NCBI GenBank assembly: GCA_026770705.1
Contig: JANJGN010000052.1
Span: 930,001-994,000 of the forward strand
From: Isurus oxyrinchus
Taxonomy: Eukaryota
Length of the DNA: 64,000 bases
Reading direction: 5' to 3'
The position numbers and the translations under genes were made by a program. Of this stretch, positions 1,984 through 62,514 are shown one piece after another; position 1 is the first letter of the stretch; each line of letters opens with the position of its first letter. The notes under the pieces were generated by a model. That model made no database searches and had not been told where the DNA came from. It saw only the letters and a list, made by a program, of their open reading frames with translations.

Positions 1984-2361
1984 CAGAAACGTGAAGCTGG
2001 GTTTCAGGGGAAACGTTATGTCTCGGACCATTGCCAAATTTTATCGTGAAAAAATAAGATCCTGCATCTTCCCGTCTGATGTTGTTTATAATCAGGGAAC
2101 AGTCGCCATCTTTCAGGTCTCCAGACAGCCGGGTCCGATGGTGGAACTGTGATAACTCGCGACTGTGACCCTTGGAGTGAAAGGCTATAGACCATTTAGA
2201 CCATTTGTTCTGTATGTATCTTCTCATTTTCCAGATTCCGACCTGTGGTTTCTTTACCAAATCTGATGGATAACTGTAATGACATGGAATCTGTACACAC
2301 GAACCTTCCTGCGCTGTCACCTCTCGTGGAGTGTCACCTTTCCACTCTTGTGACAATCCAA
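1984..2361 (-). CDS. Locus S1: Siglec-type V-set Ig exon, Arg-less (YFFTIK); gene continues beyond left edge
   Basis: ccccag acceptor and gtaag donor; 378 nt, phase 1-1, open; CVQIPC...GDLKDGDCSL...YFF pattern (B-E intra-sheet Cys, no F-strand Cys) typical of Siglec V domains. Confidence 0.92.
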
Positions 2362-2579
2362 CTGGGGAGAGAAATATCAATATTTAACTCTGGATGTTTT
2401 GTTGATCCACTAGACTCAATATCCACCCCCTCCATCACTGGGGCACAGTGGCTGCAGTGTGGAGCATCTACAGGACACACAATGAACTCCACAAGGTATC
2501 ACACCAGATGGAAGAGAATCCTGGACACAAAAGCGGAAAAGTTCATTCTACATTGGTTCATGGTCCTCAGGACCCTGTT

Positions 2580-4278
2580 TGTGCACAAGCCTGCTCTCCA
2601 ACAGAACTGAAGTTGGGGACAATGCATTTGGAATTCCACTGTCCGGGGCATTGGGTTAACTTGCTGATTTTGTTTTAAATCTAACATCTATTTTTGGTCT
2701 GTTGCCTTAAAGGGACTGTAACTGGGAGTCAGGTTAATTAGGAATTTTAGGAGTTATGATAGCAGTCTTGTAGTTATGTATGTGCTTGAAATCCTTTATT
2801 TTGATGACAAATATGTTAATTTATTGTTTTAAATCTCTGACGGTATTGGTGGAGTTATTGCTTCTGAATTAAGTGCACACATCTCATAATAAATACAAAT
2901 TGCAAAATCATTATGATAGTGTGACCAGGTTTCTCTCAGGGACTTGGTCTGCCTGGCACACATCACCTGCCAAGTGATAACACTTTTGTAATATGCCTTT
3001 CAGGGACAGCAGCATGACATCACTCGAGAGGAAGTGTGTCATGTGATTTTTAGGAACTGGTGTTCGCTTAAGTAAGTTCTATGTGTATTTGTGTGCGTTA
3101 GGCAAAAGGTCTATCTTTAAGTTCAAGTTTAGTTTGTATTTCTGTATTTGGGTGTTGAGAAAAGGGGGAACCTGAGTTAAAAAGAAGCCAGCATTCCATT
3201 GAGGTTTTATGACTGTTGAAGGGAAGTCAAAACAAATACAAGGTGTAAGAAACTATGCTGTTGCCTAGTAACAGTGATCCAGAGGGAAGGACCCACAGAG
3301 ACAGAAAAAAACAGAAAAGTACTTTCAGTTCTGTTGAAAGGAGTTGCCAGGAGAAGCAGCAAAGGAGCGGGACAGATAGTCAGTCCCAAAGTAAAGAAGA
3401 AGCCAAATCTATCGAGTTTGACAGGAGAAAGGGCCCAAGAAAACCTTCTAGTCAAATCTGGAAAAGGCCCTGTTAAGTGAAGTTAAGAGTGAGGAGCAGA
3501 AGAAGGCTTCAAGCATAAAGGGAGAAAGCAGCAGGACACAGGCCTAAAGCAAAATAGGCTTGCGAGAAGCCAGAAGATCCTAGGAGACACCACAGGTTGG
3601 TGACTCATTACTACGGCCATGTGAAGCCATGGTGTTCCATTGACACGGCTGAGCATTGGAGAGACAGGGCGTGGAAGGAAGGCTGAATGCACGTGGCGAT
3701 CCAGGGGGCAGGAACATGGGAAGGAGAGTTTGAAATAGTGAAAGTGGTCCCTTGTGGAAGGTGTCTGAGTGAAAGTGTCATGTTGGAGAAGATTCCAAAG
3801 TGAGTTCTTGGAGAGTGGAGATTGGAAACCCTCATAAGAAAGAAGCTTTTCAGTGAGACTGGTTGGCTCACAGTGCAACAAGCGTCTGGGGACAGATGAG
3901 ACATAGAATTTGTTTCAAGTGGGCTCTGCCACTTGCTTTCAGAATGTGGTGTCCCTGACCACAGGTCGTCTATTGGTTTACATCGACTGTGTACTTAGTG
4001 TGAACAAGAGAGTATAAGATAGTTATCGTAACTTGTGTTCTACTTATGAATCTGTAAAGGTATAGATCTGGGTGAATGAGTAATGTCATATAGTTTGTCT
4101 TTCCTAGTTTAATAAATGTTTTATTCTTTTGTTAGAAGTTCATCAGATGACTCCTGTGACTCTGTTCAGTAGCCGCACTCCACATTCCTAAATAAAAAAT
4201 AAAAGTTAGGACCTATCAAGCTGAGTTCCACCCTGGGATCTGACTTGCCCAGTAGTAACGACAGCTGGGATGGTAACA
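2580..4278 (+). mobile_element. LTR-like sequences inserted in S1 intron (two elements ending ...TAACA at ~2982 and ~4278)
   Basis: Absent from the paralogous S2 intron; 2620-2980 resembles the TG...CA-bounded elements at 47831 and 50929; AATAAA near 4110; boundaries approximate. Confidence 0.55.
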
Positions 4279-5081
4279 CCATCCAGTCCAAGTCTCACTT
4301 TGGCCTGTGAGCAGAACACAGCTCACACAGTTTGGCTGCAGGTGTCTCCCAGCTTTCTATCCTTGTATATCTGTTCTCATGTCCCTATTCCAAATAAATG
4401 AACCCACAATGTGTTTACCCAATTCCGTATCAGTGGCTGGTGCCTTTATATCATTATAAAAACACAACATGGTGATCGGTGGTGGCCAAACATTCAGGCA
4501 GCAAGATTCAGTACAGATATGACGTGGTGAACAGCCTTAGATCGAGCTACGTGACATGAGACGATCCTCGATGCTTTGGTCAGACCACAACAGAGACACA
4601 GCATCAGAGAGGGTTGAAATCGCAGTGTACTGACTGCTCAGGAAACCTTTGAAGACACAGTGATGGGAAAGAGCTCAAGTAAAGAGCTGGGGAGCAGACG
4701 GATCCCTCGTGGTGGGATTACAGCACACGGCCTGTAGGTCAGTGAGTGGGACAGTGTGTATCGCCAGGACCAGCAGCAGGTTAGCTCAGTCAGGGAAGGC
4801 GAGTGACCAGGGTGTGGGCTGGATCGATAGTGAGCGAGGGAGAGTCAAACACACAAAAACCATTATAAAAATCAGCCCAGAGAAGTTAGTGATTATAACG
4901 GGCGGCTTCGAGATTGCTGAACAGCAAATTGAATAAAAAACAAAGACTCCATTACTCCGTGGTGTGTTCCTGCCACAACCCGTCTTCGTGGGCGGAGCTT
5001 CGGAAAAGCGCACGAAAGGGGCTAAAGCGACACTCATCCCAGATCCTGTAGGAGAAGGAAGGTCAAAGGAATATTGTCAGA

Positions 5082-7645: not shown

Positions 7646-7685
7646 CTTGGAGAAGTGACAGGAGGAAGTAGGATTTCCCGATCAT
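7646..7685 (-). CDS. Locus S1 leader exon coding part (MIGKSYFLLSLLQ-)
   Basis: ATG 7683-7685, 40 nt, phase-1 donor AG|gtaat; acceptor tttcag at 7728; in frame with the V exon. Confidence 0.85.
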
Positions 7686-8489: not shown

Positions 8490-9890
8490 CTGTTATCATT
8501 ACGGAGGGAGTGCTGCACTGTCAGCGGGAGTTTACTGTGGGATTGCTGCTCTATCAGAGGGTCAGTACTGAGGGAGTGCTGCACTGTAAGAGGGTCAGTA
8601 CTGAGGGAGTGCTGCACTGTCGGAGGGTCAGTACTGAGGGAGTGCTGCACTGTCATAGGGTCAGTAATGAGGGAGTGCTGCACTGTCAGAAGGTCTGTAC
8701 TGAGTGAGTTCCGCACAGGTGGAGGGTCAGTATTGAGGGGGTGCCGGACTGTGGGAGGGTTTGTACTGACGTAGAGCGGAGTGCGAGGAGATATCCTTTC
8801 ATGACAAAGTTTAACTGGAATTTATTTAAACAGAATTTAAACAGTACTGTGTGTTATTGCAAAAGAAAGGATTTGAGGAACTAACTCTTGTTCCCGTAAG
8901 CCTAAAAATAATTTTCACTGATTTCTATGATTTAGCATTGAAACCTCCCTCTTTGGGCACCAGTCTTGATTGAAACAACTCGCACAGCACTGTGGGAGGG
9001 TGAGTACTGAGGGAATGCTGCACTGTGGGAGGGTGAGAACTGAGGGAGTGCTGCACTGTGGGAGTGTGAGTACTGAGGGAGTGTTGCACTGTGAGAGGGT
9101 CAGTACTGAGGGAGTGCTGCACTGTGGGAGTGTGAGTACTGAGGGAGTGCTGCACTGTGGGAGTGTGAGTACTGAGGGAGTGCTGCACTGTGGGAGAGTG
9201 AGTACTGAGGGAGTGCTGCACTGTCAGAGGGTCAGTAATGTGGGAGTGCTGCACTGTCACAGGATCAGTAATGAGGGAGTGCTGCACTGTCACAGGATCA
9301 GTAATGTGGGAGTGCTGAACTGTCGGCGGGTCTGTACTGAGTGAGTTCCGCACAGTCGGAGGGTCATTATTGAGGGGGTGCTGGACAGTGGGAGGGTTAG
9401 TACTGAGGTAGAGTGGAGCGTGAGGAGATATCCTTTCATGGCAAAGTTTAACTGGAATTTATTTAAACAGAGAGTCTTGTACTGTGTGTTATTGCAAAAG
9501 AAAGGATTTGAGGAACTAAGTCTTGTTCCCGTTAGCCTAAAAATAATTTTCAACGATTTCAATGATTTAGCAATGAAACCTCCCTCTTTGGGCATCAGTC
9601 TTGATTGAAACAACTCACACAGCACTTCAGGAGAGTGAGTACTGAGGGAGGGCTGCACTGTGGGAGAGTGAGTACTGAGGGAGTGCTGCACTGTGGGAGC
9701 GTCAGTACTGAGGGAGGGCTGCACAGTGGGAGGGTGAGCACTGAGGGAGTGCTGCACTGTGGGATCGTCAGTACTGAGGGAGTGCTGAACTGTTGGAAGG
9801 TCAGTAGTGAGGGAGGGATACAGTGTCAGAAGATCAGTCCTGTGGGAGTGCTGCACTGTCAGAAGGTGTGTACCGAGGTAGTGCTGCACA
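8490..9890. repeat. Three blocks of the 33-bp satellite separated by a duplicated ~230-bp spacer
   Basis: Unit cagtactgagggagtgctgcactgtcagagggt (11-aa ORF periodicity); 8770-8990 duplicated at 9405-9625. Confidence 0.92.
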
Positions 9891-10831: not shown

Positions 10832-10971
10832 TCAAACAGTCTGTCGACTTCCTTTCACTGTTTGTCTCTCCCAGACACAGACTCCAGTGATAGTGATAAC
10901 CACAGCCACAAGGAATATCACAGCTCGTATTCCCAGGATCAGGATCACGTGCAGAATCTCTCCTCCACTGT
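10832..10971 (-). CDS. Locus S2 terminal exon: TM with intramembrane Arg plus short Tyr-free tail
   Basis: Acceptor ctttctgtgtgttctctag; phase-1 reading (Y)SGGEILHVILILGIRAVIFLVAVVITITGVCVWERQTVKGSRQTV*; hand-translated, frame not in ORF track. Confidence 0.85.
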
Positions 10972-12634: not shown

Positions 12635-12787
12635 ATTCCACAGTAATGGTTATGAACCCCTCCACTGCTCCATGTTCATTCTCTGCCACACACTGATAGT
12701 CTCCAGTGTCCCTGGATGTAACGTGAGGAATCAGCAACCACAGCTCATTGTTGGAACTTCTTCTGTTCATTTGGACATTCAGATGTC
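12635..12787 (-). pseudogene. Locus S2 5'-truncated C2-set exon
   Basis: MNRRSSNNELWLLIPHVTSRDTGDYQCVAENEHGAVEGFITITVE with gtgag donor; similarity to the 282-nt paralogous exons stops at ~12787 and no acceptor is evident. Confidence 0.88.
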
Positions 12788-13310: not shown

Positions 13311-13684
13311 CAGAAACGTGAAGCTGGGTTACAGGATAGTAGCTGTAACTATTCCTGCTGTCAAACTCTATTCTGAAAAAATAAGGTCCTGCATCTTCCC
13401 GTCTGATGTTGTTTATAATCAGGGAACAGTCACCATCTTTCAGGTCTCCAGACAGCCGGGTACGATGGCGGAATCTTTGATCCCTGTGATTGTGACCCTC
13501 GGAGTGAAAGGCTATAGACCATTTAGGCTGTGGGTTCCCATCTATTCCTTTCAACCAGATTCTGCACGTGATCTCCCTACGAAATTTGATAAGTAACTGT
13601 AATGACATGGAATCTGTACACATGAACCTTCCTGTGCTGTCACCTCTCGTGGAGTGTCACCTTTCCACTCTTGTGACAGTCCAA
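13311..13684 (-). pseudogene. Locus S2 Siglec V-set exon (Arg retained, YFFRIE) with frameshift and mutated acceptor
   Basis: 374 nt (1-nt loss near 13562 splits it across ORFs 13551-13733 and 13231-13623); acceptor reads cccccg instead of ccccag. Confidence 0.88.
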
Positions 13685-14387: not shown

Positions 14388-14448
14388 CTTGGAGAAGTGA
14401 CAAGAGGAAGTAGATTTCCCGATCATTGTCCACTCCCAGATATTCCAT
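14388..14448 (-). pseudogene. Locus S2 leader exon; homologous ATG (14424-14426) is out of frame, upstream ATG (14446-14448) is in frame
   Basis: 39 nt from homologous ATG to donor vs 40 nt in S1; upstream ATG gives MEYLGVDNDREIYFLLSLLQ. Confidence 0.75.
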
Positions 14449-15769: not shown

Positions 15770-17630
15770 CAACAAGCTCGAGGGGTTGACTGGGCCTCCT
15801 CCTGTTCCTGTGTAACAGGCTCGAGGAGGGTGAATGGGCCTACTCCTGTTCCTGTGTAACAGGTTCAAGGGGACAGAATGGGCCTCCTCCTGTTCCTGTG
15901 TAACAGGCTCGAGGGGCTGAATGGGCCTCCTCCTGTTTCTGTGTAACAGGCTCATGGGGCACAATGGGTCTCCTCCTGGTTCTGTGTAACAGGCTCGAGG
16001 GGCTGAATGGGCCTCCTCCTGTTCCTGTGTAAAAGGCTCGAGGGGCTGAATGGGCCTCCTCCTGTTCCTGTGTAAAAGGCTCGAGGGGCTGAATGGGCCT
16101 CCTCCTGTTCCTGTGTAACAGGCTCATGGGGGCTGAATGGCCTCCTTCTCTCACTGTGTACCAGGCTCATGGGGCTGAGTGGGCCTCCTCCTGTTCCTGT
16201 GTAAAAGGCTAAAGGGGCTGAATTGGCCTTCCCCAGTTCCTGTGTACCAGGCTCGAGTACATTAGGAGCATCATTGGAAGCAGCGTTTCACTTGCACTTC
16301 CCTCAATTTAATCTACTGCCTTCACTGCTCCCAATGTGGTCTCCTCTACATGGGACAGACCAAACACAGACTGGGTGATCGCTCTGATGAACACCTTCGG
16401 TCTGTCCACAAGCATGACCCAGACCTCCCTGTCGCTTGCCATTTTAACACCCCACCCTGCTCTCATGCCCACATGTCCGTCCTTGGCCTGCTGCATTGTT
16501 CCAGTGAAGCCCAACACAAATAGGAGGAACAACACCTCATCTTCCGACCTGGCACTTTACAGCCTTCCGGTCTGAATATTGAGTTCAACACTTTCAGATC
16601 ATGAACTCTCTCCTCCATCCCCACTCCCTTTCCAATCTCCCTTTTCCATTAATTTATCAGTTTTAATATTTTTTTTATTTATATATTTTTCTTTTCCCAC
16701 ATTTTTCCATTATTTTTAAATGTTTTACATCTGTTGTTGTATCTCTACCTTTTAGCCTATTTCAATCCTTTCCCCCCACCCCACCCCCACTAGGACTATC
16801 TGTCTCTTGCTCGTCCTGCTTTCTACCCTTAATGTCCCCATTAGCACCTTCCTCAGATAATATCACCACCGTCAACACCCCTTTGTCCTTTTGTCTATCA
16901 CATCTTTGGCAACCTCTTCTTTACCTCCACCTATCACTGGCCCACAATCCAGCTCTACCTGCCCCACCCCCTCTACCAGCTAAAACATCACCTCATTTCT
17001 CGATTCCCTTAGTTCTGATGAAGAGTCATACAGACCCAAAACGTCAAGTGTGTTCCTCTCCACAGATCCTGTCAGACCTGCTGAGTTTTTCCAGCTATTT
17101 TTGTTTTTGTTGCCGTTCATGTGGAACAGGCTTGAGTGGCTGAATGGAGCCCCTAATGTTCCTGTGTAACAAGCTTGTGGAGGCTGAATGGGTCTCCTGT
17201 TCCTGTGTAACAGGCTCAAGGGGACAGAATGGGCCTCCTCCTGTTCCTGTGTAACAGGCTCGAGGAGGGTGAATGGGCCTCCTCCTGTTCCTGTGTAACA
17301 GGCTCAAGGGGACAGAATGGGCCTCCTCCTGTTCCTGTGTAACAGGCTCGAGGAGGGTGAATGGGCCTCCTCCTGTTCCTGTGTAACACGTTCAAGGGGA
17401 CAGAATGGGCCTCCTCCTGTTCCTCTGTAAAAGACTCGAGGAGGGTGAATGGGCCTCCTCCTGTTCCTGTGTAACAGGCTCGAGGAGGGTGAATAGGCCT
17501 CCTCCTGTTCCTGTGTAACAGGTTCAAGGGGACAGAATGGGCCTCCTCCTGTTCCTGTGTAACAGGCTTAAGGGAACAGACTGGGCCTCCTCCTGTTCCT
17601 GTGTAACAGGCTCGAGGAGCTGAATGTCCT
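15770..17630. repeat. ~43-bp minisatellite (gaatgggcctcctcctgttcctgtgtaacaggctcgaggggct) split by a Penelope fragment
   Basis: Tandem units at 15770-16258 and 17120-17630; unit resembles the CR1 3' terminus. Confidence 0.9.
16280..17110 (+). mobile_element. Penelope-like element 3' fragment (GIY-YIG region)
   Basis: Closely similar to 55120-55960, which encodes IYCIHCSQCGFLYIGDTK. Confidence 0.85.
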
Positions 17631-17664
17631 CCTCTCATTAAAAATAAATACTGCAGATGCTGTA

Positions 17665-19134: not shown

Positions 19135-20710
19135 TATTATTGATCCAAATCAAAAAATTCCATCCACAGTAGAGACATTAATTATTGATACTGAACGGGG
19201 TTTGATTATTGATCCTGAACGATGTTTGATTATTGATTCTGAACGGGGTTTGATTTTTAATTCTGAACGGGGTTTGATTATTGATTCTGAAAAGGGTTTG
19301 ATTATTTATTCTGAATGGGTTTTGATTATTGAATCTGAACGGAGTTTGATTATTGATCCTGAACGTAGTTTGATTATTGATACTGAACAGGGTTTGATTA
19401 TTGATTCTGAACGGGGTTTGATTATTGATACTGAATGGGGTTTGATTATTGATACTGAACGGGGTTAGATTATTGATACTGAACGGGGTTTGATTTTTAA
19501 TACTGAACGGGGTTAGATTATTGATACTGAACGGGGTTTGATTTTTAATTCTGAACGGGGTTTGATTATTGATTCTGAACGGGATTAGATTATTGATACT
19601 GAACAGGTTTGATTTTTAATTCTGAACAGGGTTTGATTATTGATACTGAATGGGGTTTGATTATTGATACTGAATGGGGTTTGATTATTGATTCTGAAAG
19701 GGTTTTGATTATTGAATCTGAACGGGGTTTGATTATTGATCCTGAACGAAGTTAGATTATTGATATTGAACGGGGTTTGATTATTGATATTGAACGGGGT
19801 TTGATTATTGATTCTGAACGGTGTTTGATTATTGATCCTGAACGGAGTTTGATTATTGATACTGAATGGGGTTTGATTATTGATTCTGAACAGTGTTTGA
19901 TTATTGATTCTGAACGGGGTTTGATTATTGATACTGAACGGTGTTTGATTCTTGATTCTGAACTGGGTTTTGATTATTGATTCTGAAAGGGGTTTGATTA
20001 TTGATTCTGAATGGGGTTTGATTATTGATACTAAACGGGGTTGGATTATTGATACTGAACGGGGTTTGATTATGTATACTGAACGGGGTTTGATTATTGA
20101 TTCTGAACGCGGTTTGATTATTGATACTGAGCGGGGTTTGATTATTAATTCTGAACGGGGTTTGTTTATTGATACTGAACGGGGATTGATTATTGATTCT
20201 GAAAGGGGTTTGATTATTGATACTAAACGGGGTTGGTTTATTGATACTGAACGGGGTTTGATTATGTATACTGAACGGGGATTGATTATTGATTCTGTAC
20301 GCGGTTTGATTATTGATTCTGAACGGGGTTTGATTATTAATTCTGAACTGGGTTTGTTTATTGATACTGAACGGGGATTGATTATTGATTCTGAATGGGG
20401 TTTGATTATTAATTCTGAACAGGGTTTGATTATTGATACTGAACGTGGTTTGTTTATTGATACTGAACGGGGATTGATTATTTATTCTGAAAGGGGTTTG
20501 ATTATTAATTCTGAACGGGGTTTGATTATTGATACTGATCGGGGTTTGATTATTGATTCTGAACGGGTTTTATTATTGTTACTGAACGGAGTTTGGTTAT
20601 TGATACTGAACGGGGTTTGATTATTGATTCTGAACGGGGTGTGTTATTGATTCTGAACGGGGTTTGATTATTGATTCTGAACGGGGTTTGATTATTGATT
20701 CTGAACGGTG
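19135..20710. repeat. 24-bp minisatellite (ttgattattgattctgaacggggt)
   Basis: ~1.6 kb of tandem units filling the last S3 intron. Confidence 0.95.
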
Positions 20711-20841
20711 TTGGGTGTGAGTTTGGTTGGGTTTGGGAGTGACTGTATAAAACATTGCAGATACAGGAGTGGAGCAGCCATATCAATAACCAGGCTACTG
20801 GAGCAGCTGAGAGGCTGGGGATCCTGTGGTGTGTGACTCAC

Positions 20842-20947
20842 CTGATTCCTCAAAGCCCAACCACGCTCACAGTTTTCATAAACAGGACCTCGATATTCAT
20901 CAACACGGTGGTTCGATTTGATTCCTGCTTTCCCCTCACCTCTCTTC
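20842..20947 (-). CDS. Locus S3 first cytoplasmic exon (KRGEGKAGIKSNHRVDEYRGPVYENCERGWALRNQ); acceptor reads CG, not AG
   Basis: 106 nt, phase 2 to 0, exactly bridging the TM exon and last exon; donor CAG|gtgagt; polypyrimidine tract present but ends tttcg. Confidence 0.7.
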
Positions 20948-21292
20948 CGAAATAGAGATGGAAATGGACAGAATGACAATCAACATGATGTGTATTCGGT
21001 GTTGGGTTTGATTATTGGGGAGAGAGTTCCAGATTTCCACTCCCCTTTGTGTGAAGAAGTGCTTCCTGACATCACCCCTGAACGGCCTGGCTCCAATCTA
21101 AAGTTCCAGCCCCCTTGTTCTGGACTCCACCCGACCCCCACCACCCACCCCCACCCGAGGGAATAGCTTCTCTCTATCGACCCTATCGAGTGTTTAATCA
21201 GTTTGAACCCCTCAATTAGATCCCTCCTAAATCTTCTAGACCCGAGTGAATATAATCGTAGACTGTGTGTAACCTGTCTGCATAATTTAACC

Positions 21293-22262: not shown

Positions 22263-22359
22263 TTTCTCACACACTTGAAGATGAAGAATCCACTCAGTCC
22301 AACACTCAAACAGATTCCAGCTCCAAGCAATCCTGCTTTCCATTCATTGGAATCTCGCC
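22263..22359 (-). CDS. Locus S3 transmembrane exon (RRDSNEWKAGLLGAGICLSVGLSGFFIFKCVRK)
   Basis: ttacag/gtaag; 97 nt, phase 1 to 2; paralogous to 52623-52719. Confidence 0.88.
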
Positions 22360-42349: not shown

Positions 42350-42430
42350 ACTTCCCTGAGTGTGGCCGGTGTGTTTAACATTTAAGCCACACAGACAGGA
42401 TGTGGTTAAAAGGTGAAACCACAAGGAGTG
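42350..42430. promoter_or_regulatory. Candidate haematopoietic enhancer (ETS:RUNX composite)
   Basis: ACAGGATGTGGT at 42395-42406, AACCACA at 42417-42423, ACTTCC at 42350; motif evidence only. Confidence 0.4.
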
Positions 42431-44799: not shown

Positions 44800-45850
44800 T
44801 CATTTATGGGATATGGACGGAACTGGCGAGGCCAGAATTATTGCCCATCCCTAATAGCCCTTGAGAATATGGTAATGAGCTGCCTTCTTGAACTGTTGCA
44901 GTCTATGTGGTGTAGGTACACCCACAATGCTGTTAGGGAGGGTGTTCCAGGATTAGGACCCAGTGACTGTGAAGGAACGGCCGATATATTTCCAAGTCAG
45001 GATAGTGAGTGACTTGGAGGGTAACTTCCAGGTGGTGGTGTTACCATGTATCTGCTGCCCTGTAATTCGAGATGGTAGTGGTCGTGTGTTTGAAGGTGCT
45101 GCCTAAGGAGTTTTGGTGAGTTCCTGCAGTGCACCTTGTAGCTGGTACACACTGCTGCTACTGTGTGTCGGTTGTGCAGAGAGTGAATGTTTGTGGATGG
45201 GGAGCCGAACTAGTGGGGCTGCTTTGTCCTGAGTGGTGTTGAGTTTATTGAATCTTGTTGGAGCTGCACTCATCCAGGCAAGTGGAGAGTCTTCCATCAC
45301 ACTCCTGACCTGTGCCTTGAAGACGGTGGACAGGTTTTGGGGAGTCTGGAGTGAGTTACTCACTGCATGATTCCCAGCCTCTGACCTGCTCTTGTAGCCA
45401 CAGTATTTTTATGGCTAGTCCAGTACAATTTCTGGTCAATGGTAACCACCAGGATGTTGATAGTGGGGCATTCAGCAGTGGTAATGTCATTGAACATCAA
45501 GGAGCGATGGTTAGATTCTCTCTTATTGGAGATGGTCATTGCCTGACACTTGTCAGCCCAAGCCTGGATATTGTCCAGGTCTTGCTGCATTTGGACAAGG
45601 ACTGCTTCAGTATCTGAGGAGACGTGAATGGTGCTGAACATTGTGCAATCATCAGTGAACATCCACACTTCTGTCCTTATGATGGAAGGAAGGTCATTGA
45701 TGAAGCAGCTGAAGGTGGTTGGGTCTTGGACACTACCCTGAGTAACTCCTGCAGTGATGTCCTGGAACTGAGATGATTGACCTCCAACAACCACAACTAT
45801 CTTCCTTTGTGCTGGGTATGGCTCCAACCAGTGGAGAGTTTTCCCTCTGT
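44800..45850 (-). mobile_element. Non-LTR LINE RT 3' fragment
   Basis: GVTQGSVQDPTTFSCFINDL...MFTDDCT (PQGS/FADD-like motifs). Confidence 0.9.
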
Positions 45851-47090
45851 TATGATGTGGTAGATGATGTGTGCCGGGGGACCAAATCCACAAGGGAAAC
45901 TTGGTCACACTATCACAACAGTTTTGCGATTTGTATTTATTATGAGATGTGTGCACTGAATTCAGGAGTAATGTGTCAACCAAGACATTTAGAGATCTTA
46001 AAAATTAAATTTTAATATTTATTTAAGATTTAAAGCACACACATAAGGATACGGTTACTACTATAACAAATCCTAAACTTCCTAATTAACCTTGAAGATG
46101 GTGGACAGGCATTGGGAAGTCTGGAAGTGAGCAGTAAAACTCCTTTTAGGCAATAAACCAAAATAGATTTTAGATTTAAAAACAGAACCAGCAAGTTAAC
46201 ACAGAACACACTTGAGAGTGGATTTCCAAATGGCTTTCTCGAACGACAGTCGCTGAACATAACAGACCTATGGACAAATGCCTGGAGGCTTCTTCAAGGC
46301 TGATTCACACACTCTTGTTAGATTTTACATGATCCCCAACATAGCCTTTCATTCTCCTTTGTTGATGTTTCTCTCTCTTTGATATGTAAATTTCATTGTT
46401 CCATATGTCTTTGGAATGATACATTTCCCATAATATAAAAACTTTCATGTTGCCAATGTTGTCAATAACCTTTGGGAAAAATAAACACACTCCTTTGCCT
46501 TGCATATCGGCCTCGTTGTAAACAGACCAACAGCCCTTTGAAATCCAAACAATCCCTTCACTTACCTAAAAATTAAAATTCTCTTTCTCACCTCACATGC
46601 AAAGAAAGCCTCCATGTTCACTCATTAGCATTTCAAGTACATTTCTACACCTAGCTTCTTTTGATAATCTCAAACTTGCAGTCTACCTGACTCCAGGTGT
46701 AATTAAACCACACAGACAGACCCATCTACACTCACACCCATAAACCTAGTTTACAACAAACCAGGAAAATATTAAGCAAATTATTATACTTTCGTACCAC
46801 CCCTGATTCCCATTGACTCCAGTTTTACTCGGGATCCTAGATGCCACACTCGGTCAAATGCAGCCTTGATGTCAAAGGCAGTCACTCTCACCTCACCTTG
46901 TATTAACAGATGTTAAATTATACATAATTCATAAGCTTCTCACAATCTTTTACAGCATGGAAAAAGGTGCAGCATTCAGAAAGCTCACTCAGAACCAATA
47001 AAAAAAAGTTGAGCAACATCATATTTCTGTTCATTACTATTTGGCCATGTTGGCTGCACACACCCCACAGCCCCGCTCCCTGTTTCACAC

Positions 47091-47339
47091 TCAGTTTTTC
47101 TGGAACCTGATCTGTGCGTATTCCGTGTCCTCGCTCCTGTGCACAGTCCTGTCACCGCCGGGCAGCTTTGAAAAGTTGATGTTGGCGTAGAGAAGCTTGG
47201 CGGGATTGTCGGGGTTCCCATGTCCAACATCGCCTCCCACTGGACCTTCAGAGAGATCCCGGGGAGCTGGGGTCTCCCCCTCACTAGTTGTGTCTCTGGT
47301 TGTGTTCCGGGGCTCAGTAATCAGCACGTTCTGTTTACC
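47091..47339 (-). CDS. Locus S4 distal last exon with ITIM (LLYANI) and ITSM (TEYAQI)
   Basis: ctgtag acceptor; phase 0; open to TGA at 47091-47093. Confidence 0.88.
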   Translation of the reverse strand, partial: GKQNVLITEPRNTTRDTTSEGETPAPRDLSEGPVGGDVGHGNPDNPAKLLYANINFSKLPGGDRTVHRSEDTEYAQIRFQKN

Positions 47340-47830
47340 CTACAGAGAAATGGAAACAGAAGATATCCTCACATCAATTACTGGTACTGATAGGGTTAAA
47401 TTATTGTGCAGCCTCATTAGTGTCAGTCGTATCTCAGTGGGTTTAACCCTTTTTTTCACTCTCTTTCTCTGTCTCTCTCGCTTTCTCTCTCTCTTTATAA
47501 TTTAATCTCTATCACACTCCAACAGTGCAGCACTCCCTCAATACTGACCCTCTGACAGTGCAGCACTCCCTCAGTGCTGACCCTCCGACAATACAGCGCT
47601 CCCTCAGTACTGACCCTCTGTCAGTGCAGCACTCCCTCAGTACTGACCCTCCAACAGTGCAGCACTCCCTCAGTACTGACCCTCCAACAGTGCAGCACTC
47701 CCTCGGTAATGGCTCTGGTGAGTGATGGCTTGGAATCTGCACACAGGTGCCTGGTGTGAGGCTCAATAACATGAACCTTGTAATCAGAGAGAGGATGAGA
47801 GAGAGGGAGAGAGGAGGGACAGAGACAGAG

Positions 47831-48764
47831 TGTTATTAATCTATTAATGTTTGTATTATAAATGCAAACTGTCTTTTTAAACAGAGGTTTAGTCTGTGTG
47901 TGTGTCTGTGTGTATTTTAATTGGATTAAAGCCAGCCAGTCTGGGTGCTTTGATGTATAGTAGTTTTCAGATGTAAACAAAGAGGTAAAGTGGTAATTTG
48001 CATTTTTAAATAAAACATTAAATGCCTGAGAGTGAAATCTTAAACCAATCAACGTTTATATTACTAATAAAATTGATACGATGAAAGGGGATTTATTATT
48101 GGAAGAGATGGAGTTCAAAGGTCCTGATGATACATTGCGAATTTACCTTCAAACAGAAGCCATAAGACCATCAGATATAGGAGGAGAAATTAGACCATTC
48201 GGTCCATCGAGTCTGCTCCACCATTCATACATGGCTGATATGTTTCACAAACCCCATTCTCCCACCTTCTCTCCTAACCTTTGATCCCCTGACCAATCAA
48301 GAGCCCATCAATCTCCGTCTTCCTTACACTCAAGAGCTGGGTATAACTTGAGCAGTTTTGTGTGTGCAGAACAGAGGCTTGTAACATCAAAGCAGCTGTA
48401 AGCCTACACCTGTCTGCAAAGGAACCAAAGTGAAAGGAACCTCATTTGGAATTTGTGAGGTGAAAATGCTTTGCCTGGGTGTCTGCTTAAAGATAATGGG
48501 TTGTCTTAGAGGAGATTAGTTTGAGAATTTGTTAAAAATTTATGATGATACTAGTTTGTAGCCATGTGCATATGTTTAACTTGTGTAAATTAATATATGT
48601 CTCAAGTAGTTTGATATAAAACCATCTCAAGAACTGGTGGTCTTATTCCTGAATTTAGAGCTGCATCTCAAACATTCCACTGGGAAATATAGGTTATGAC
48701 AGTTGTTTAAAGTTTCCCTCTGGGATTTTAAACAACAGCCTTTACCAGTTTCTGTGTCATAATA
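47831..48764 (+). mobile_element. Solo LTR-like element (duplicate of 50929-51683) with a short CR1 insert
   Basis: High similarity to the 50929 copy; extra ~48160-48330 segment. Confidence 0.6.
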
Positions 48765-48899
48765 GAGAGACAGCATGATACTGAACCATTGCTGACTCCA
48801 CAGATACAAATCAGTGGGTAACTGGGCTGGGAATCTGGGACATGTGTTGTCTACACACTGAGATTGAAGCTTTGGAGTGAGTGTAAACAGCTCCTGTAC

Positions 48900-48981
48900 C
48901 TGGTGCTTCACACAGAGTGAACTGGGGGTCAATGCAATGTCTCTGGTCCCTGAAACTCTCTCCTCCATCGCTGTCTTTCTC
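48900..48981 (-). CDS. Locus S4 distal first cytoplasmic exon (RKTAMEERVSGTRDIALTPSSLCVKHQ)
   Basis: ttgcag/gtac; 82 nt, phase 2 to 0. Confidence 0.82.
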
Positions 48982-50169
48982 CTGCAATAACACAATATGA
49001 CACTGTGGTTATCATATAGCAGAGAGTCAGTGCAGCACAGACATAGAGCACACTGTAACCTTACACCAATGACTGGACTGTCTCTTTAAATCACTTCTGC
49101 ACAAAGCACAGAATCTAGAATCTTGACACCATCCAGGACAAAGCAGCCCGATTGATCTACAACCCATCCCCCACATTAAACATTCACTCCCTCCACCATG
49201 AACACACAGTGGCAGCAGTGTGTGTACCATCTACAAGATGCACTGCAGCAACTCAGCAAGGCTCCTTCAACAGCACCTTCCAAACCCACGAACTCTACCA
49301 TCTAGAAGGACAAGGGCAGCAGACACATGGGAACACCACCACCTGGAAGTTCCCCTCCAAGTCACTCACCATCCTGACTTGGAAATATATCACCGTTCCT
49401 TCATTGTCGCTGGGTCAAAATCCTGGAACTCCCTCTCTAACAGCACTGTGGGTGTACCTACACCACATGGACCGCAGCGGGTCAAGAAGGCAGCTCACCA
49501 CCACCTTCTCAAGGGCAATTAGGGATGGGCATTAATGCTGACATCACCAGTGACAGACACATTCGATGAAAGAATTAAAAATCTCACAGCTCAATGTATT
49601 TATTGTGACCCTGCTGCACACACTCCCTGTCGAAGGAGCCTTTGTGGTTCTATTGTTAATCGAAGCAGATCAGAGTTACTACAACCACTTGCATTTATAG
49701 CACCTTCAATGTAGCAAAATGTCCTAAGGCTCATCTGGGGATTGTTAGTGACATCTTCACCTGACTCTGAGGCACATGAGGAGATATTAGGGACAGGAGA
49801 CCAACAGCTGAGTCAACAAAGTCAGTTATTAACGGGCATCTTAAAGGAGGAGCTGGAGATAGGGAATGAGAGACAGACACAGAAAGAAAGACAGAGACAG
49901 GGAGAGAGAGAGAGAGAGAGAGGGAGAGAGCGAGAGAGAGAGGGAGAGAGAGAGAGAGAGAGAGAAAGACAGTGAATCTCTATCCCCAATGGCTCAGCAT
50001 CCAGTCCTCTCTGGAGAAGCATTTCATTCCAAACCACACCAACCGCAGCCCAATTCCATCCCTTCCTCCCTCTTTCCCCCTCTCCCCCAGTGGGTGTTTC
50101 CTGTTCCCAGGAATCTCAATCACTACCCCCCACCCCCATACCTCCTCACTCACTCTCCCCATTTCTCAT

Positions 50170-50418
50170 TCAGTTATGCTCGAACCTGATCTGTGCGTAT
50201 TCCGTCTCCACTTCCCTGTGGACAGACCCATCACCACTGGACATCCTCAAGACTTGGGGATTGGCGTAGAGAAACTCTTCAGGTTTGTCAGGGTTCCCAT
50301 GTCCAACATCGCCTCCCACTGCATCTTCAGAGAGACCCCGGAGAGCTGGGGTCTCCCCCTCGCCAGTTGCGTCTCTCTTTGTGTTCTGGGGCTCAGTAAT
50401 CAGCACGTTCTGTTTACC
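50170..50418 (-). CDS. Locus S4 proximal last exon with disrupted ITIM (FLYANP) and ITSM (TEYAQI)
   Basis: ctgtag acceptor; phase 0; open to TGA at 50170-50172. Confidence 0.88.
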   Translation of the reverse strand, partial: GKQNVLITEPQNTKRDATGEGETPALRGLSEDAVGGDVGHGNPDKPEEFLYANPQVLRMSSGDGSVHREVETEYAQIRFEHN

Positions 50419-50928
50419 CTACAGAGAAATCGAAACAGAAGTTATCCTCACATCATTTACTGGCACTGATAGGGTTAAATTATTGTGCAGCCTTGTTAAT
50501 GTCAGTCGTGTCTCAGTTGGTTTAACCCTCTCTCTCATGTCATATGAAAGATACCACCTATGGCAGTGCAACGCTCCCTCAGGACTGACCCTCCGACAGT
50601 GCAGCACTCCCTCAGTACTGACCCTCCGACAGTGCAGCGCTCCCTCATTACTGACCCTCCGACAGTGCAGCGCTCCCTCAGTACTGACACTCCGACAGTG
50701 CAGCTCGCCCTCAGTACTGACCCTCCGACAGTGCAACACTCCCTCAGTACTGACCCTCTGTCAGTCTTGCACTCCCTCGGTAATGGTTCTGGTGAGTGAC
50801 AGTTGGATTCTGCACTCAAGTGTCTGGTGTGAAGCTCATTAACATGCACCTTGTAATCAGAGAGAGGATGAGAGAGAGAGAAAGAGAGAGAGAGAGAAAG
50901 AAAGGGAGGTTGGGATAGAGAGAGAGAC

Positions 50929-51683
50929 TGTCATGATGCGATTAATAAATATCATGTTATTGGAAATTATTTTTATTCACATCGGGGTTTAGTCTGTGGG
51001 TGTGTCTGTGTGTGTTTTAATTGGATTAAAGCCAGCCAGTCTGGGTATTTGATGTATAGTAGTTTTGAGATGTAAACTGAGGCATAAAAATTTGTATTTT
51101 TAAACAGAGCATTCAAAACCTGAGAGTGAAATCTTAAACCAATCAACATTTATTTTATTGATAAAATTGATACTATGACAGAGGATTTATTGTTTGAAGG
51201 GATGGAGTTCAAAGGTCCTGATGATACAATTAGAATTTACATTCAAAGAGAAGAGCTGGGTATAACTTGAGCAGTTTTGTGTGTGCAGAGCAGAGGCTTG
51301 TAACATCAAAGCAGCTGTAAGCCTACACCTGTCTGCAAAGGAACCAAAGTGAAAGGAACCTCATTTGGAATTTGTGAGGTGAAAATGCTTTGCCTGGGTG
51401 TCTGCTTAAATTCTATGGGTTATCTTAGAGGAGATTAGTTTGGGAATTTGTTAAAAAGTTATGATAATACTAGTTTGTAGCCATGTGCATATGTTTAACT
51501 TGTGTTAATTAATAAATGGCTCATGTAGTTTGATATAAAACCATCTCGAGAACTGGTGGTCTTATTCCTGAATTTAGAGCTGCATCTCAAACATTCCACT
51601 GGGAAATATAGGTTATGACAGTTGTTTAAAGTTTCCCTCTGGGATTTTAAACAACAGCCTTTACCAGTTGCTGTGTCATAACA
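50929..51683 (+). mobile_element. Solo LTR-like element
   Basis: TGTCATG...CATAACA inverted termini and internal AATAAA; no clean TSD seen. Confidence 0.65.
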
Positions 51684-51818
51684 GAGAGACAGCATGATAC
51701 TGAAACATTGCTGACTCCACAGGTACAAATCAGTGGGTAACTGGGCTGGGAATCTGGGACACGTGTTGTCTACACACTGAGATTGAAGCTTTGGAGTGAG
51801 TGTAAACAGCTCCTGTAC

Positions 51819-51900
51819 CTGGTGCTTCACAGAGAGTGAACTGGGGCTCAATGCAATGTCACTGGTCCCTGAAACTCTCTCCTCCATCGCTGTCTTTCTC
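51819..51900 (-). CDS. Locus S4 proximal first cytoplasmic exon (RKTAMEERVSGTSDIALSPSSLSVKHQ)
   Basis: ttgcag/gtac; 82 nt, phase 2 to 0. Confidence 0.85.
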
Positions 51901-52622
51901 CTGCAATAACACAATATCACACTGTGGTTATCATATAGCAGAGAGTCAGTGCAGCACAGACACAGAGCCCACTGTTAGCTTACACCAACGACTGGACTGT
52001 CTCTTTAAATCACTTCTGCACAAAGCACAGAATCAAGAAGCTTGACACCATCCACAACAAAGCAGCTCGATTGATCAACACCCCATCCACCACATTAAAC
52101 ATTCACTCCCTCCACCACGAACACACAGTGGAAGCAGTGTGTGTACCATCTACAAGATGCACTGCAGCAACTCAGCAAGGCTCCTTCAACAGCACCTTCC
52201 AAACCCACGACCTCTACCATCTAGAAGGACAAGGGCAGCAGACACATGGGAACACCACCACCTGGAAGTTCCCCTCCAAGTCACTCACCATCCTGACTTG
52301 GAATTATATCACCGTTCCTTCACTGTCGCTGGGTCAAAATCCTGGAACTCCCTCTCTAACAACACTGTGGGTGTACCTACACCACATAGACTGTAGTGGG
52401 TCAAGAAGGCAGCTCACCACCTCTTTCTCAAGGGGCAATTGGGAATGGGCAATTAGTATTGTCCACGCCAATGACAGCCACATTCGATGAAAGAATTTAA
52501 AATCTCACAGCTTAGGAGGAAGCCACTCAGCCCATCGTGCCTGTGCTGGCCTTTTGTAAAAACTGTCCAATTAGTCCTAAGCAAATGTTTAGATTAAAAT
52601 CAAGTTAAATCTTCAGACTTAC

Positions 52623-54005: not shown

Positions 54006-54299
54006 CTTTGACCCACAGATACATCTTGAACATGGCTTCCCCATGTGGGTTTTGAACCGAGCAGGATGCAATCACTCCCCCCTCATCCTGGGGTCTCATC
54101 AGGGTGAGGAAACCAGTCACCAGATGCCCATCTCTGACCTGCCACGACACAAAACCTCCGTGTGTTTGGTTACCACTGATGTTCGCACTGGGCAGGTGCC
54201 AGGTGAGGTCTCCGGGTGGGTTGGAGGTGGCCACACAGACGCAGGTGACCCCCTCTGATCTCCGAGTGCACTCCGACTGCTGGGAAATCTCCGGCTTAT
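54006..54299 (-). CDS. Locus S4 membrane-proximal Ig exon, MAG domain-5-like
   Basis: 294 nt, phase 1-1; KPEISQQSECTRRSEGVTCVCVATSNPP...CSVQNPHG; the S-x-C...C-x-C...SNP pattern matches MAG and fish Siglecs. Confidence 0.9.
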
Positions 54300-56291: not shown

Positions 56292-56573
56292 GTTCCACAG
56301 TGATGGTTATGAACCCCTCCACTGCTCCATGTTCATTCTCTGCCACACACTGATAGTCTCCAGTGTCCCTGGATGTAACGTGAGGAATCACCAACCACAG
56401 CTCATTGTTGGAACTTGTTCTGTTCATTGGGACATTAAGATGTCGCCACGTCAGGTTAGAAGCTGGGAAGCTCTCGACAGAGCAGATTATCACTGCAGAA
56501 TTCCCCTCAATTATATTGATCGATGAAGCGTTAATCATATCAAGAGAAGTAATTGAGAGATTCTGTGGTGCAT
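56292..56573 (-). CDS. Locus S4 C2-set exon (domain 3)
   Basis: ttttag/gtgag; 282 nt; near-identical to 23626-23907. Confidence 0.92.
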
Positions 56574-57439
56574 CTAAAAATATATAAAGATTTTAATGTG
56601 AGCAAACACAGTGCACAGCAAAACTTCCTGTATCTTCTCGCTGTAACTGATGCCTGTGTGCATTTCTAGGCACCCTCTCTCAAGATAAGTTCCTATGTCA
56701 CATTTACAATGGGCACTGCCTATGTAAACTGTCACACTGCAGGAGCATTCTCCCACCAGAGACCCTGCCCATCCAGATTTAAAGAAACAGCCTTTCACAT
56801 CCTCAGAATGTCCCCAAGGGCTTGACAGGCAATGAATTATATTTGATCGATGGAGCACTGAGGGGTAAATCTACAATTCTCTGTTCAGGAGGTTGCTCAT
56901 CCAATTCAGGGTCTTGTTGATCTGGAGTTTACCTTCCTTCAGCACAGAATCGGAGCTGACACCGAGACTCCAGTGCAGCACTGAGAGAGGAGAGGGAACT
57001 CACATGTGTGTATGTGTGTGTGTGTGTTTGTGTTTCTGTACAAGTGAGTGTGTTTGTGTGTGTGTATGTGTGTGTGTGTGTGTTTGTGTTTCTGCACAAG
57101 TGATTNNNNNNNNNNNNNNNNNNNNNNNNNNNNNNNNNNNNNNNNNNNNNNNNNNNNNNNNNNNNNNNNNNNNNNNNNNNNNNNNNNNNNNNNNNNNNNN
57201 NNNNNNNNNNNNNNNNNNNNNNNNNNNNNNNNNNNNNNNNNNNNNNNNNNNNNNNNNATGTGCGTGCTTACGTGTGTGTGTGTGTGTGTGCATGTGTGTG
57301 TGCGTGTGTGTGTTGTGTGTGTGCACGTGTGCGTGTGAATGTGCGTGCTTACATGTGTGTGTGTGTCTGTTGGTGTGTGTCTGGTCTGTGTAACCTGTAA
57401 ACCTAACCCTTCCACACTGATGGTCACAAACATCCCCCA

Positions 57440-60620: not shown

Positions 60621-60990
60621 CTAGGTATCTATAGAACTATCTCTCTCCGTGTTCTATTCTCATGTGACCTTGAGTAATTAATGATAAATACTATCTATTT
60701 ACATTTTTAATATTAAACTTTTATACTACATCTCCCCCAAAATCTTTGACATCAATGAAGACAATATTTATATTATCCTATATTGTCTTTTAAGTTCAAC
60801 CTTGGCCCCCTCTGCCTTATCAGGTAGGCATAAACAATCCCAAGGCTTAATACAGGAAGAGCTCTCCCTGGTCAATATCACTAATAAAAAAGGACCTGTT
60901 TTGTCTTCAACCCAGTGATGTTTGTGGGATCTTGCTCTGCACATTGTATCCTATTACAGCTAATATAGAATCAAGGGTGTCAGTACTTAC

Positions 60991-61287
60991 CTTGTACAGT
61001 TAGTACAAGGGTCCGCTCCGATGAAACAGATGGATATCTCACTCTGCAGCAGAGAGTGTGTCCGTGGTGTTTGAGTGATGGGGTCAGGGTCAGAACAGAA
61101 GTATAGGTCAGAGTGACACCATGCTGAGTTACAGTGTTTGAGACTGATCCAGGTACGTCAGTGGGAGTGTCCCAGGTTAAGACAGGTGCAGCTGTTCCAT
61201 TGCACGTTGTGTTGAAGGTGCAGCTTACATCCACACGCTTTCCTGCAATAATTTCAGCAGGGAATATCGTGGGTTTATCTGTGAAAT
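60991..61287 (-). CDS. Locus S4 C2-set exon (domain 2)
   Basis: gttag/gtaag; 297 nt; DFTDKPTIFP...VSCTFNTTCNG...LTW...SVLTLTPSLKHHGHTLCC. Confidence 0.92.
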
Positions 61288-62145
61288 CTAACAGACAGAG
61301 AATGGATCCTTTTAGAGAAATATAATGTGAAGCATCAGTTCAAATAGAAACCACAGTCCCACAAGAGAAAGCACTTTTACAAGGATGATATGAGAACTGA
61401 GAGGTTACAATGATCAGGAAAGATTTTCTTGCTCTTTGGCAGTAGTGTTTCTGTCTCTCAGCTTAATACACGTTCACTCCGAGACATGTGAATTGAGAAC
61501 ACTGGATGAGAGAAGAGGCTGAGACCAGAGATTGGAGTTAAAAGCAGAATACTGCGGATGCTGGAAATCTGAAACAAAAACAAAAATTGCTGGAAAGACT
61601 CAGCAGGTCTGACAGTATCAGTGGAGAGGAAGACAGGGTTAACGTTTCGAGTCCGTATGACTCTTCATCAGACCAGAGGTTTGAGTTCACTGGCTTCTCA
61701 TTTCCTCAGTGATCTAGGTGATTTAGCACCTTGTGGTTTGTTGGATCTTGCTGTGCACAAACTGCCTGCTGTGTTTTACATCTGTGACTACAATTCAGGA
61801 ATAATTTCATTGGCTGTGAATGGATTTGGATCCTCCTGAGGTGGTAAATTGCGCTGCAGAAATGCACATCTTTCTTTTATCGATACGTCAGACTTTTAAA
61901 CAGGACAGGAGAGATTGATGGGAGTGGTAACCTGATAATACAGTTAATGCTTTTCATCATTGATATTAAAGTGAGTATTAGACGTTGCTTTAGGACTGAA
62001 CTGGAAGCTATCACCAGGTTATTGAGAATCAGACAGTGTGTTATAATAAGCTGTGTTTTGTGTTAATATGTAAATGTCACAGTTTGTGTTATTTCCCATT
62101 GAGTGTTGAATGTGAATTGTTGAGTAATTATAACACAGCACTTAC

Positions 62146-62514
62146 CAGAAACGTGAAGCTGGGTTACAGGATAGTAGTTGTAACTATTACTGCTGTCAAA
62201 TTCTATTCTGAAAAAATAAGGTCCTGCATCTTCCCGTCTGATGTTCTTTATAATCAGGGAACAGTCGCCATCTTTCAGGTCTCCAGACAGCCGGGTCCGA
62301 TGGCGGAACCGTGGTAACTCGTGACTGTGATCCTTGGAGTGAAAGGCAATAGGAGCCCAGGGAATCTGTTTCTCATTATTAAACCAGACTCCACCTCGCG
62401 GTTGGTTTTCCAGACACGATGGATAACTGTAATGACAAGGAATCTGTACACACGAACCTTCCTGCGCTGTCACCTCTCGTGGAGTGTCACCTTTCCACTC
62501 TTGTGAGGGTTCAA
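62146..62514 (-). CDS. Locus S4 Siglec V-set exon with essential Arg (YFFRIE); leader not found in window
   Basis: ccccag/gtaag; 369 nt, phase 1-1, open. Confidence 0.94.

Follow-up and report, generated by a model that had tools for sequence, protein, structure and literature searches.

A 64,000-nucleotide stretch of the Isurus oxyrinchus genome (assembly GCA_026770705.1, contig JANJGN010000052.1, positions 930,001 to 994,000; hereafter the window) most probably holds a slice of a large, tandemly duplicated family of CD33-like Siglec genes of elasmobranchs, in which phase-1 immunoglobulin (Ig) exons are combined with one of three 3' cassettes. In this reading, locus S4 carries an inhibitory cassette with immunoreceptor tyrosine-based inhibitory and switch motifs (ITIM and ITSM), S3 carries a tail of YxN motifs (tyrosine with asparagine at position +2), S2 is a decayed gene ending in a transmembrane (TM) exon with an arginine, and S1 is partial. 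The evidence consists of the exon structure, its conservation, gene models from other elasmobranchs in which the same cassettes follow Siglec ectodomains, and contig joints at S3. New here are the cassette architecture and the conserved class of YxN tails; no paper on shark Siglec families was found in the literature searched for Siglec with shark terms.

Exons were located by tblastn, using the window's own open frames and 150 relatives, each against the window, and splice sites and phases were set by hand on the exons found. Searches were made with single exons rather than a spliced model, and the window exons entered the tree singly. In both tblastn searches of the window, Ig and tail exons were confined to the minus strand. 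The exons of the four minus-strand loci lay where the first-pass annotation had placed them, and its positions 1984, 10832, 18965, 20842 and 62514 turned out to be exact splice or stop positions.

Siglec ectodomains and the predicted inhibitory gene S4

The V exons matched Pfam V-set and Ig_CD22, and their best PDB matches were Siglec V domains (E about 1e-15). For the V exon of S4 (V3), the top 17 PDB matches were all Siglecs (E 1e-15 to 8e-14), the next class following at 1e-7. Siglec-5, MAG, Siglec-8, Siglec-7, CD33, Siglec-10 and sialoadhesin were found at E 1e-15 to 6e-14 with the arginine of the YFFR motif aligned, whereas Siglec-15 (2e-7) and CD22 (7e-4) were clearly more distant. By E-value, V3 is about equally near to MAG, sialoadhesin and the CD33-related Siglecs, and no subgroup was singled out. 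The essential arginine of strand F is kept in the V exons of S4 (PYFFRIE) and S2; it is replaced by threonine in S1 and by tyrosine in S3. Siglec cysteines (C-x4-C near strand B, (D/N)C(S/T) in strand E, no cysteine in strand F and C-x5-C in the first C2 domain) were read from the translations of S4 (SCVQIPC, GDCSL, SCTFNTTC) and S3 (SCVVIPC, KNCSV), the disulfides being predicted. The first C2 exon of S4 (61040-61050) reads HTLCCRVRY where all great white models have HTLSCRVRY, which gives it one additional cysteine.

The first-pass annotation had described V and C2 exon families shared by all four loci. This applies to S1, S2 and S4; S3 shares the C2b exon family with S4 (90-98% amino acid identity) but differs from it in the V exon (29%) and the first C2 exon (40%). 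The exons of S4 are as follows, in gene order.

62146-62514, minus strand: V-set exon of Siglec type, YFFR arginine kept, phase 1-1, 94% amino acid identity to great white model P0193
60991-61278, minus strand: C2a, first C2-set exon, with the C-x5-C pair, 95-98% to great white models
56292-56573, minus strand: C2b exon (I-set/Ig_3)
54006-54299, minus strand: C2d, membrane-proximal exon, 80% to S. canicula P0207
52623-52719, minus strand: TM exon, uncharged, phase 1 to 2
51819-51900, minus strand: cytA, cytoplasmic exon, phase 2 to 0
50170-50418, minus strand: tail 1, FLYANP and TEYAQI (ITSM), stop
48900-48981, minus strand: cytA', a duplicate of cytA
47091-47339, minus strand: tail 2, LLYANI (ITIM) and TEYAQI (ITSM), stop, 89% to Cetorhinus P0003

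All these exons are open and phase-compatible. S4 is predicted from them to be an intact inhibitory gene whose 5' leader exon lies past the window end. None of the six runs of N in the window touches an exon. One of them (57106-57257, flanked by a CA/TG microsatellite) lies in the S4 intron between C2a (60991) and C2b (56573), and the completeness of the S4 Ig exon set is as scaffolded across it. Since all Ig exons are phase 1-1, an exon hidden in this gap would leave the frame unchanged.

Both S4 tails had been annotated as carrying an ITIM and an ITSM. This proved correct for the distal tail 2 (LLYANI, TEYAQI), which has the proximal ITIM and C-terminal ITIM-like motif of CD33-related Siglecs. 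It did not for the proximal tail 1, which lacks this arrangement: FLYANP is a YxN motif and does not qualify as an ITIM. The tails belong to a tandem duplication (50155-52512 versus 47076-49591, 82-95% nucleotide identity) that ends short of the TM exon, leaving S4 with one TM exon and two tails. An internal donor, ATCAG/GT, is found just ahead of the stop in both tail exons (50186 and 47107, minus strand). In great white model P0190, two tail cassettes are concatenated in one frame through such an internal donor into cytA', giving four tyrosine motifs. The tandem tails of S4 may likewise be joined as well as chosen between, the two cassettes being used alternatively or in concatenation. Once phosphorylated on tyrosine, the ITIM and ITSM would be expected from their motifs to recruit SHP-type phosphatases.

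Tail 2 is colinear with the tails of tree-shrew CD33 and of turtle Siglecs; both motifs, their spacing and the C-terminal end are in register (LLYANI and TEYAQIRFQKN before the stop in tail 2, ELHYASLSF...TEYSEIRTQ before the stop in tree-shrew CD33). The shared pattern at the C-terminus is L[LH]YA[NS][IL][NS]F ... TEY[AS][QE]IR.Q, with weak E-values (0.003-0.06) for these short segments. Because of this colinearity with mammalian and turtle CD33-type tails, the inhibitory tail looks ancient. The sequences favour an old shared cassette rather than an independent invention, and the suggestion in the first-pass annotation that the system was independently built is disfavoured for the inhibitory arm.

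S4 resembles the CD33-related Siglecs in its V-set domain with the F-strand arginine (YFFR), Siglec cysteines, C2-set domains and uncharged TM segment, and in the proximal ITIM and distal ITIM-like motif or ITSM at a C-terminus colinear with tree-shrew CD33. The elasmobranch genes differ from them in extra Ig exon types (C2b, C2d), in V domains stacked in some members and in the duplicated tail cassette. A teleost-based study of fish Siglecs from 2020, in which cartilaginous fish are not mentioned, described fish genomes as lacking CD33-related Siglecs (PMC7226832). Large CD33-type families in sharks and rays contrast with this teleost-based view. If our reading is true, both paired-receptor logic and a brake of CD33 type would date to the base of the jawed vertebrates.

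S3, a MAG-like V domain and a YxN tail

S3 was compared with the great white RefSeq model "myelin-associated glycoprotein-like isoform X4" (P0274, 552 amino acids). Its exons are listed with amino acid identities to P0274 and with contig joints from sequencing runs X1, X2, X5 and X6, described below.

33671-33716, minus strand: leader exon MGEVGLILIFISLLQ, matching the P0274 N-terminus
32494-32850, minus strand: V exon, MAG-like, tyrosine for the essential arginine (YYFY), 91.5% to P0274
30119-30406, minus strand: first C2 exon, 96.8% to P0274
29353-29610, minus strand: candidate Ig exon C2c, open, phase 1-1, possibly a cassette exon
24387-24668, minus strand: C2b exon 1, with contig joints
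23626-23907, minus strand: C2b exon 2, linked to the TM exon by contigs of X1 and X6
22263-22359, minus strand: TM exon, uncharged, phase 1 to 2
21458-21542, minus strand: cyt1, 85 nt, phase 2 to 0, found in 18 models including P0274, donor used in a run X5 contig
20842-20946, minus strand: yxn1, phase 0-0, containing DEYRGPVYENCE (VYENC), 97% to P0274
18965-19081, minus strand: yxn2, terminal exon, ending in DDDLYANCEFAKDSVYGNL (LYANC ... SVYGNL) and a stop

P0274 has the same exon chain, cyt1, yxn1 and yxn2 included, and is 87-97% identical to S3 exon by exon from leader to stop (95-97% in the two C2b exons, 96.8% in the TM exon, 89% in cyt1 and 87% in yxn2 up to the P0274 C-terminus). With identity below 100%, P0274 is the gene of another species or a paralogue. 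S3 itself is, as judged from its exons, an intact receptor gene. Its V exon found MAG (Siglec-4) as best PDB match (E 6e-15), followed by Siglec-5 (5e-11) and CD33 (1e-7), and NCBI calls the great white counterpart "MAG-like". Unlike MAG, S3 has tyrosine for the arginine (YYFRGDLGGY in MAG, YYFYVDVEGY in S3), its two C2b exons, TM exon and tail are of the CD33-like cluster type, and the tail is of the YxN kind. The S3 product would be built of a MAG-like V domain devoid of the arginine and the chain TM-cyt1-yxn1-yxn2.

The three YxN motifs previously noticed in S3 (VYEN, LYAN and VYGN) are all present, but the exon set proposed for the tail had overlooked cyt1 (21542-21458), and the YxN frame is read only when this exon is included. 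The S3 TM exon ends in phase 2, so that only cyt1 (phase 2 to 0) puts yxn1 and yxn2 in the YxN frame. A direct join of the TM exon to yxn1 translates as REVRGKQESNRTTVLMNIEVLFMKTVSVVGL followed by a stop, a sequence free of tyrosine; skipping of cyt1 would thereby shift the S3 frame to a tyrosine-free stump.

Four runs, from two organisms and guessed to be RNA, supplied the Logan contigs aligned on 20713-24750. The runs were probably ranked in part by repeat words, and the alignment omits some rows at repeats. It also excludes the 24-bp satellite at 19181-20712, and yxn2, beyond the aligned stretch, is seen as a loose end only. Contigs of runs X1 and X6 join 23626 to 22359 (C2b exon 2 to TM) across a GT..AG intron, and contigs of runs X1 and X2 join the TM donor at 22263 to 20946. 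One piece of a 1131-nt contig covers exactly 20946-20842 and is followed by about 950 further bases, which fits the AATAAA found 775 nt after the S3 stop. The loose end of X1 at 20842 continues with AAGAAAGATGA, which are the 11 bases that open yxn2. These joints support the S3 chain Ig-TM-yxn1-yxn2. The first-pass annotation had made its proposal depend on the Ig exons being joined to the exons at 10832 or 18965/20842; the contigs link Ig, TM and yxn1, with run-on into yxn2. One contig (run X5) ends exactly at the cyt1 donor 21458, and contig depth over cyt1 is very high. The inclusion of cyt1 between TM and yxn1 is predicted from the 18 gene models and the reading frame.

The cyt1 exon is multi-copy, with four copies in the window. 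Three further copies (15609-15525, 14961-14877 and 8220-8136, minus strand) are each open with both splice sites, and two of these precede the leader exons of S2 and S1 by about 450 nt. The extra copies look like remnants of tandem duplication whose breakpoints fell within the tail region. A 43/44-bp satellite (15771-16257 and 17115-17634) has a unit that resembles part of cyt1 (GAGG.CATTCAGCCC). Most of the last S3 intron consists of the 24-bp satellite, in 64 copies.

The YxN tail is conserved well beyond Isurus. Aligned C-termini from five shark orders and rays follow the pattern D-[IL]-Y-[AE]-N-C-x7-[IV]-Y-[GA]-N-[IVLM]-COOH. The asparagine at +2 of the terminal motif is invariant (23/23 aligned tails), the inner motif reads YKSC in two lamniform models (Cmax_S12, Ccar_CD33l), and the inner motif almost always has cysteine at +3 (Phe or Trp in two members). 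The two tyrosines are 11 residues apart in nearly all tails. Lamniformes, Carcharhiniformes and Orectolobiformes all retain YENC in yxn1. The "adaptor-like third class" of the first-pass annotation is thus borne out as a conserved tail class, seen in 25 gene-model clusters from sharks and rays, the adaptor function being inferred only. yxn1 and yxn2 are duplicates, their local alignment score being matched by 2/2000 shuffles. In addition, the NPD...LYAN..F.K segment of yxn2 aligns with the ITIM region of S4 tail 2 (local score 36 against 21.9 +/- 4.2, reached by 10/2000 shuffles), which suggests that the YxN tail was derived from an ITIM exon.

What this tail would signal was considered from its motifs. 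It has no canonical membrane-proximal ITIM or ITSM. Its x7 spacing fits the immunoreceptor tyrosine-based activation motif (ITAM), Yxx[LI]-x6-8-Yxx[LI], but it departs from this consensus at the first +3 residue, an invariant cysteine. At the sequence level it agrees with the pYxN docking consensus of the Grb2 Src homology 2 (SH2) domain, an asparagine being conserved at +2 after the tyrosine. pYxN is a Grb2 site in CD22 (YENV) and Siglec-G/10 (PMC6286995), and Grb2 binding to pYxN is described for the Ig tail tyrosine (ITT) motif (PMC4263166). The Grb2 sites of CD22 (Y4, YENV), Siglec-G/10 and the tail of membrane IgG (mIgG) share with the shark tail the tyrosine and the asparagine at +2 as well as conservation across species, and those of CD22 and Siglec-10 also the Siglec context (PMC6286995, PMC4263166). 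In CD22, Siglec-10 and mIgG, however, YxN stands beside ITIMs or the ITAM-bearing B-cell receptor, whereas in the shark tail the YxN tyrosines stand alone, with the inner cysteine at +3 and an ITAM-like spacing. We give docking of Grb2-family SH2 adaptors, as the readout of the third tail, a chance approaching even. The conserved YxN-only tail is a candidate for Siglec signalling through Grb2-type adaptors alone.

Several points weigh against the overall interpretation. The adjacency of S3 and S4 is as scaffolded, across five runs of N at 36999-43494 between the last S4 tail exon (47091) and the S3 leader (33716). The acceptor of yxn1 reads CGG before 20946 in the window (on the coding strand, 20947-20948 is GG for AG). 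A weakened acceptor, a polymorphism or an error of assembly may lie behind this, and an in-frame AG 3 nt downstream keeps the frame. C2c is absent from P0274 and is unsupported by that model. The contig alignment can be read with or without the letters of cyt1 between TM and yxn1, and a direct join would be out of frame. The runs are contigs, only guessed to be RNA, and some, 97-99% alike, probably come from sister species or paralogues. For other species (rays, lamniforms and further sharks), the NCBI/GenBank gene models are automatic predictions. Every signalling step and ligand binding belong to an inferred picture. Finally, many members have a terminal [SA][IV]YxN[IVL] that agrees with the ITIM consensus, and a tyrosine spacing of 11 residues suits an ITAM, which leaves the sign of third-tail signalling ambiguous.

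The ITIM-like end could mean that the third tail is another inhibitory tail, its terminal S/A-[IV]-Y-x-N-[IVL] recruiting SHP-1/2, and S3 a second brake. The pattern [SIVL]xYxx[ILV] is matched by SVYGNL of the window and by SIYGNI, SIYANV and SIYENV of rays, the first YxN stretch shows the alignment to the inhibitory ITIM region given above, and in CD22 the binding of Grb2 itself serves inhibition (PMC6286995). Yet position -2 is alanine or proline in many members, the features that are fixed, asparagine at +2 in both motifs and cysteine at +3 in the first, are not needed by an ITIM, and the ITSM of every inhibitory tail is missing. We consider a second brake unlikely. A built-in, non-canonical ITAM, in which the tyrosine pair binds the tandem SH2 domains of a Syk-family kinase and activates without an adaptor chain, also seems doubtful. 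It would agree with the tyrosine distance of 11 in nearly all sharks and rays (Yxx[CFW]-x7-Yxx[ILVM], inside the x6-8 range) and with acidic residues ahead of both tyrosines; it does not agree with an invariant cysteine (Phe or Trp in two members), rather than Leu or Ile, at the first +3, nor with the different spacing of bony-fish relatives that have similar dual YxN ends. Docking of Grb2-family adaptors is the readout we prefer.

As a tentative synthesis, for which we claim only a limited likelihood, the YxN tail would be an ancient third arm beside a brake and an adaptor-coupled accelerator: a self-contained module of Grb2 type or a proto-ITAM, remodelled from an ITIM exon before sharks and rays split. 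In this scheme the inclusion of cyt1 would be the splice switch that selects either a signalling tail or a tyrosine-free stump, and the tandem inhibitory cassettes would provide brakes of one or two doses.

Tail classes across elasmobranchs and the decayed gene S2

A HMMER scan with V3 returned 1409 proteins (E up to 0.001), and a search with a great white protein returned 116 named clusters, all from sharks, rays and skates. With the tail by itself as query (P0007, residues 420-516), two bamboo-shark proteins were recovered under a word filter too stringent for such short segments. Among 280 fetched proteins, the TM-Arg cassette was found in 9 clusters, a yxn2-type tail in 25 and an ITIM/ITSM tail in 33, most of these tail-bearing models sitting on related V and C2 ectodomains. 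The great white "Siglec-12" models P0193 and P0196, which have TM-Arg ends, are 94% identical to S4 in the V and 94-97% in the C2a domain, and the V domain of the ITIM-type great white model P0151 is 92.5% identical to that of S4. A tree of V+C2a has 105 rows, 44 of which carry a tail label; these require 14 class changes (mean of shuffled labels 18.2; 3/200 shuffles as low), and path distances of 0.08-0.12 separate the S4 V from members of each of the three tail classes. The tree shows interspersed tail classes and not a count of events, many branches being weakly supported.

It is hardly credible that the tails are chance open frames or parts of unrelated genes nearby. The exons are short, the introns rich in repeats and cyt1 multi-copy, as noted. 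However, dozens of models from more than 15 elasmobranch species end in these cassettes right after Siglec Ig and TM exons, the contigs link Ig, TM and yxn1 and run on from yxn1 into yxn2, and all phases match; on gene models, contig joints and phases, we rejected the tails as chance open reading frames (ORFs) or exons of other genes.

The TM-Arg cassette was found intact in S2, whose exons are as follows.

14388-14426, minus strand: leader remnant with a 1-nt deletion (39 nt for 40)
13311-13684, minus strand: V exon, acceptor AG changed to CG, 374 nt, arginine codon kept
12635-12785, minus strand: C2b exon, 3' half only
10832-10971, minus strand: TM-Arg terminal exon, intact, 93% to the C-termini of great white P0193 and P0196

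The TM-Arg exon has a good acceptor, a TM segment with an arginine (ILILGIRAVIFLVAVV) and a 12-residue tail without tyrosine (ERQTVKGSRQTV and a stop), and is terminal in 8/9 gene-model clusters carrying it. Exon 10971-10832 thus combines the basic TM residue and short, motif-free tail of activating members, and would serve as the terminal cassette of activating-type receptors paired with an Asp-bearing ITAM adaptor. No ITAM adaptor gene was found within the window. The V acceptor is CG in S2 (V2) and AG in S1 (V1) and S4 (V3), and the V2 exon has 374 nt against 378 in V1 and 369 in V3, resulting in a frameshift and in-frame stops. S2 also has no C2a exon. To judge from its sequence, S2 is a decayed gene with five lesions, in the leader, V acceptor, V frame, C2a and C2b. 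The description of S2 as having a TM arginine and no tyrosine stands for the terminal exon, while the ectodomain in front of it is broken in five ways.

We also considered S2 as a working activating receptor, in which the small lesions are assembly errors, V2 is joined directly to the TM-Arg exon, and S2 makes a genuine pair with S4 in the window. Each of the three small lesions affects a single base, in two cases within a C run, the assembly has gaps, and members without C2 exist (P0003, V-V-TM; P0021, V-TM). The V2 arginine codon and the TM-Arg exon are intact, and V2 and V3 are 88.5% identical at the nucleotide level. This reading nevertheless requires three independent errors in one gene, and an absent C2a and a truncated C2b are not explicable by base-calling errors. 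We regard it as highly improbable and keep S2 as a decayed gene.

The pairing of activating and inhibitory receptors proposed in the first-pass annotation finds support at the family level, where the S4 V domain has close relatives (94% and 92.5%) on TM-Arg and ITIM endings and the tails are interspersed; within the window it does not, S2 being decayed and the S3 V domain MAG-like. As in Siglec-5/14 and Siglec-11/16, related ectodomains stand on an ITIM tail or on a short tail with a basic TM residue, which is an arginine in Siglec-14 too. The ectodomains of those pairs are >99% identical, against about 80-94% in the shark family; the pairs have two endings and the shark family three, and the shark copy of activating type in the window is a pseudogene-like remnant. 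The family represents a natural experiment in swapping of 3' cassettes among near-identical ectodomains, and the window holds debris of such swapping in its decayed gene, orphan tail exons and duplicated tails.

S1 and repeats

At the start of the window, two exons of S1 were found.

7646-7685, minus strand: leader exon MIGKSYFLLSLLQ
1984-2361, minus strand: V exon, open, arginine replaced by threonine (SYFFTIKF)

The rest of S1, including its 3' end, lies before the window start, and S1 would be the 5' end of another family member. Great white P0011 (isoform X2), which has the look of an unusual splice form, has an N-terminus 100% identical to an alternative frame in the region of the S1 leader (7707-7648, MKYLGVDNDREILLPPVTSP).

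A 33-bp satellite occurs in both orientations in introns and spacers of all loci and yields long spurious ORFs (STEGVLHC... and its other frames). Fragments of reverse transcriptase (Pfam RVT_1) from elements resembling long interspersed nuclear elements (LINE) lie between receptor genes.

8496-9889, 24800-25689, 32002-32361, 34943-35498, 37378-38098, 47517-47708 and 50564-50782, both orientations: 33-bp satellite
1332-1763 and 45363-46004, minus strand: reverse-transcriptase fragments of LINE-like elements

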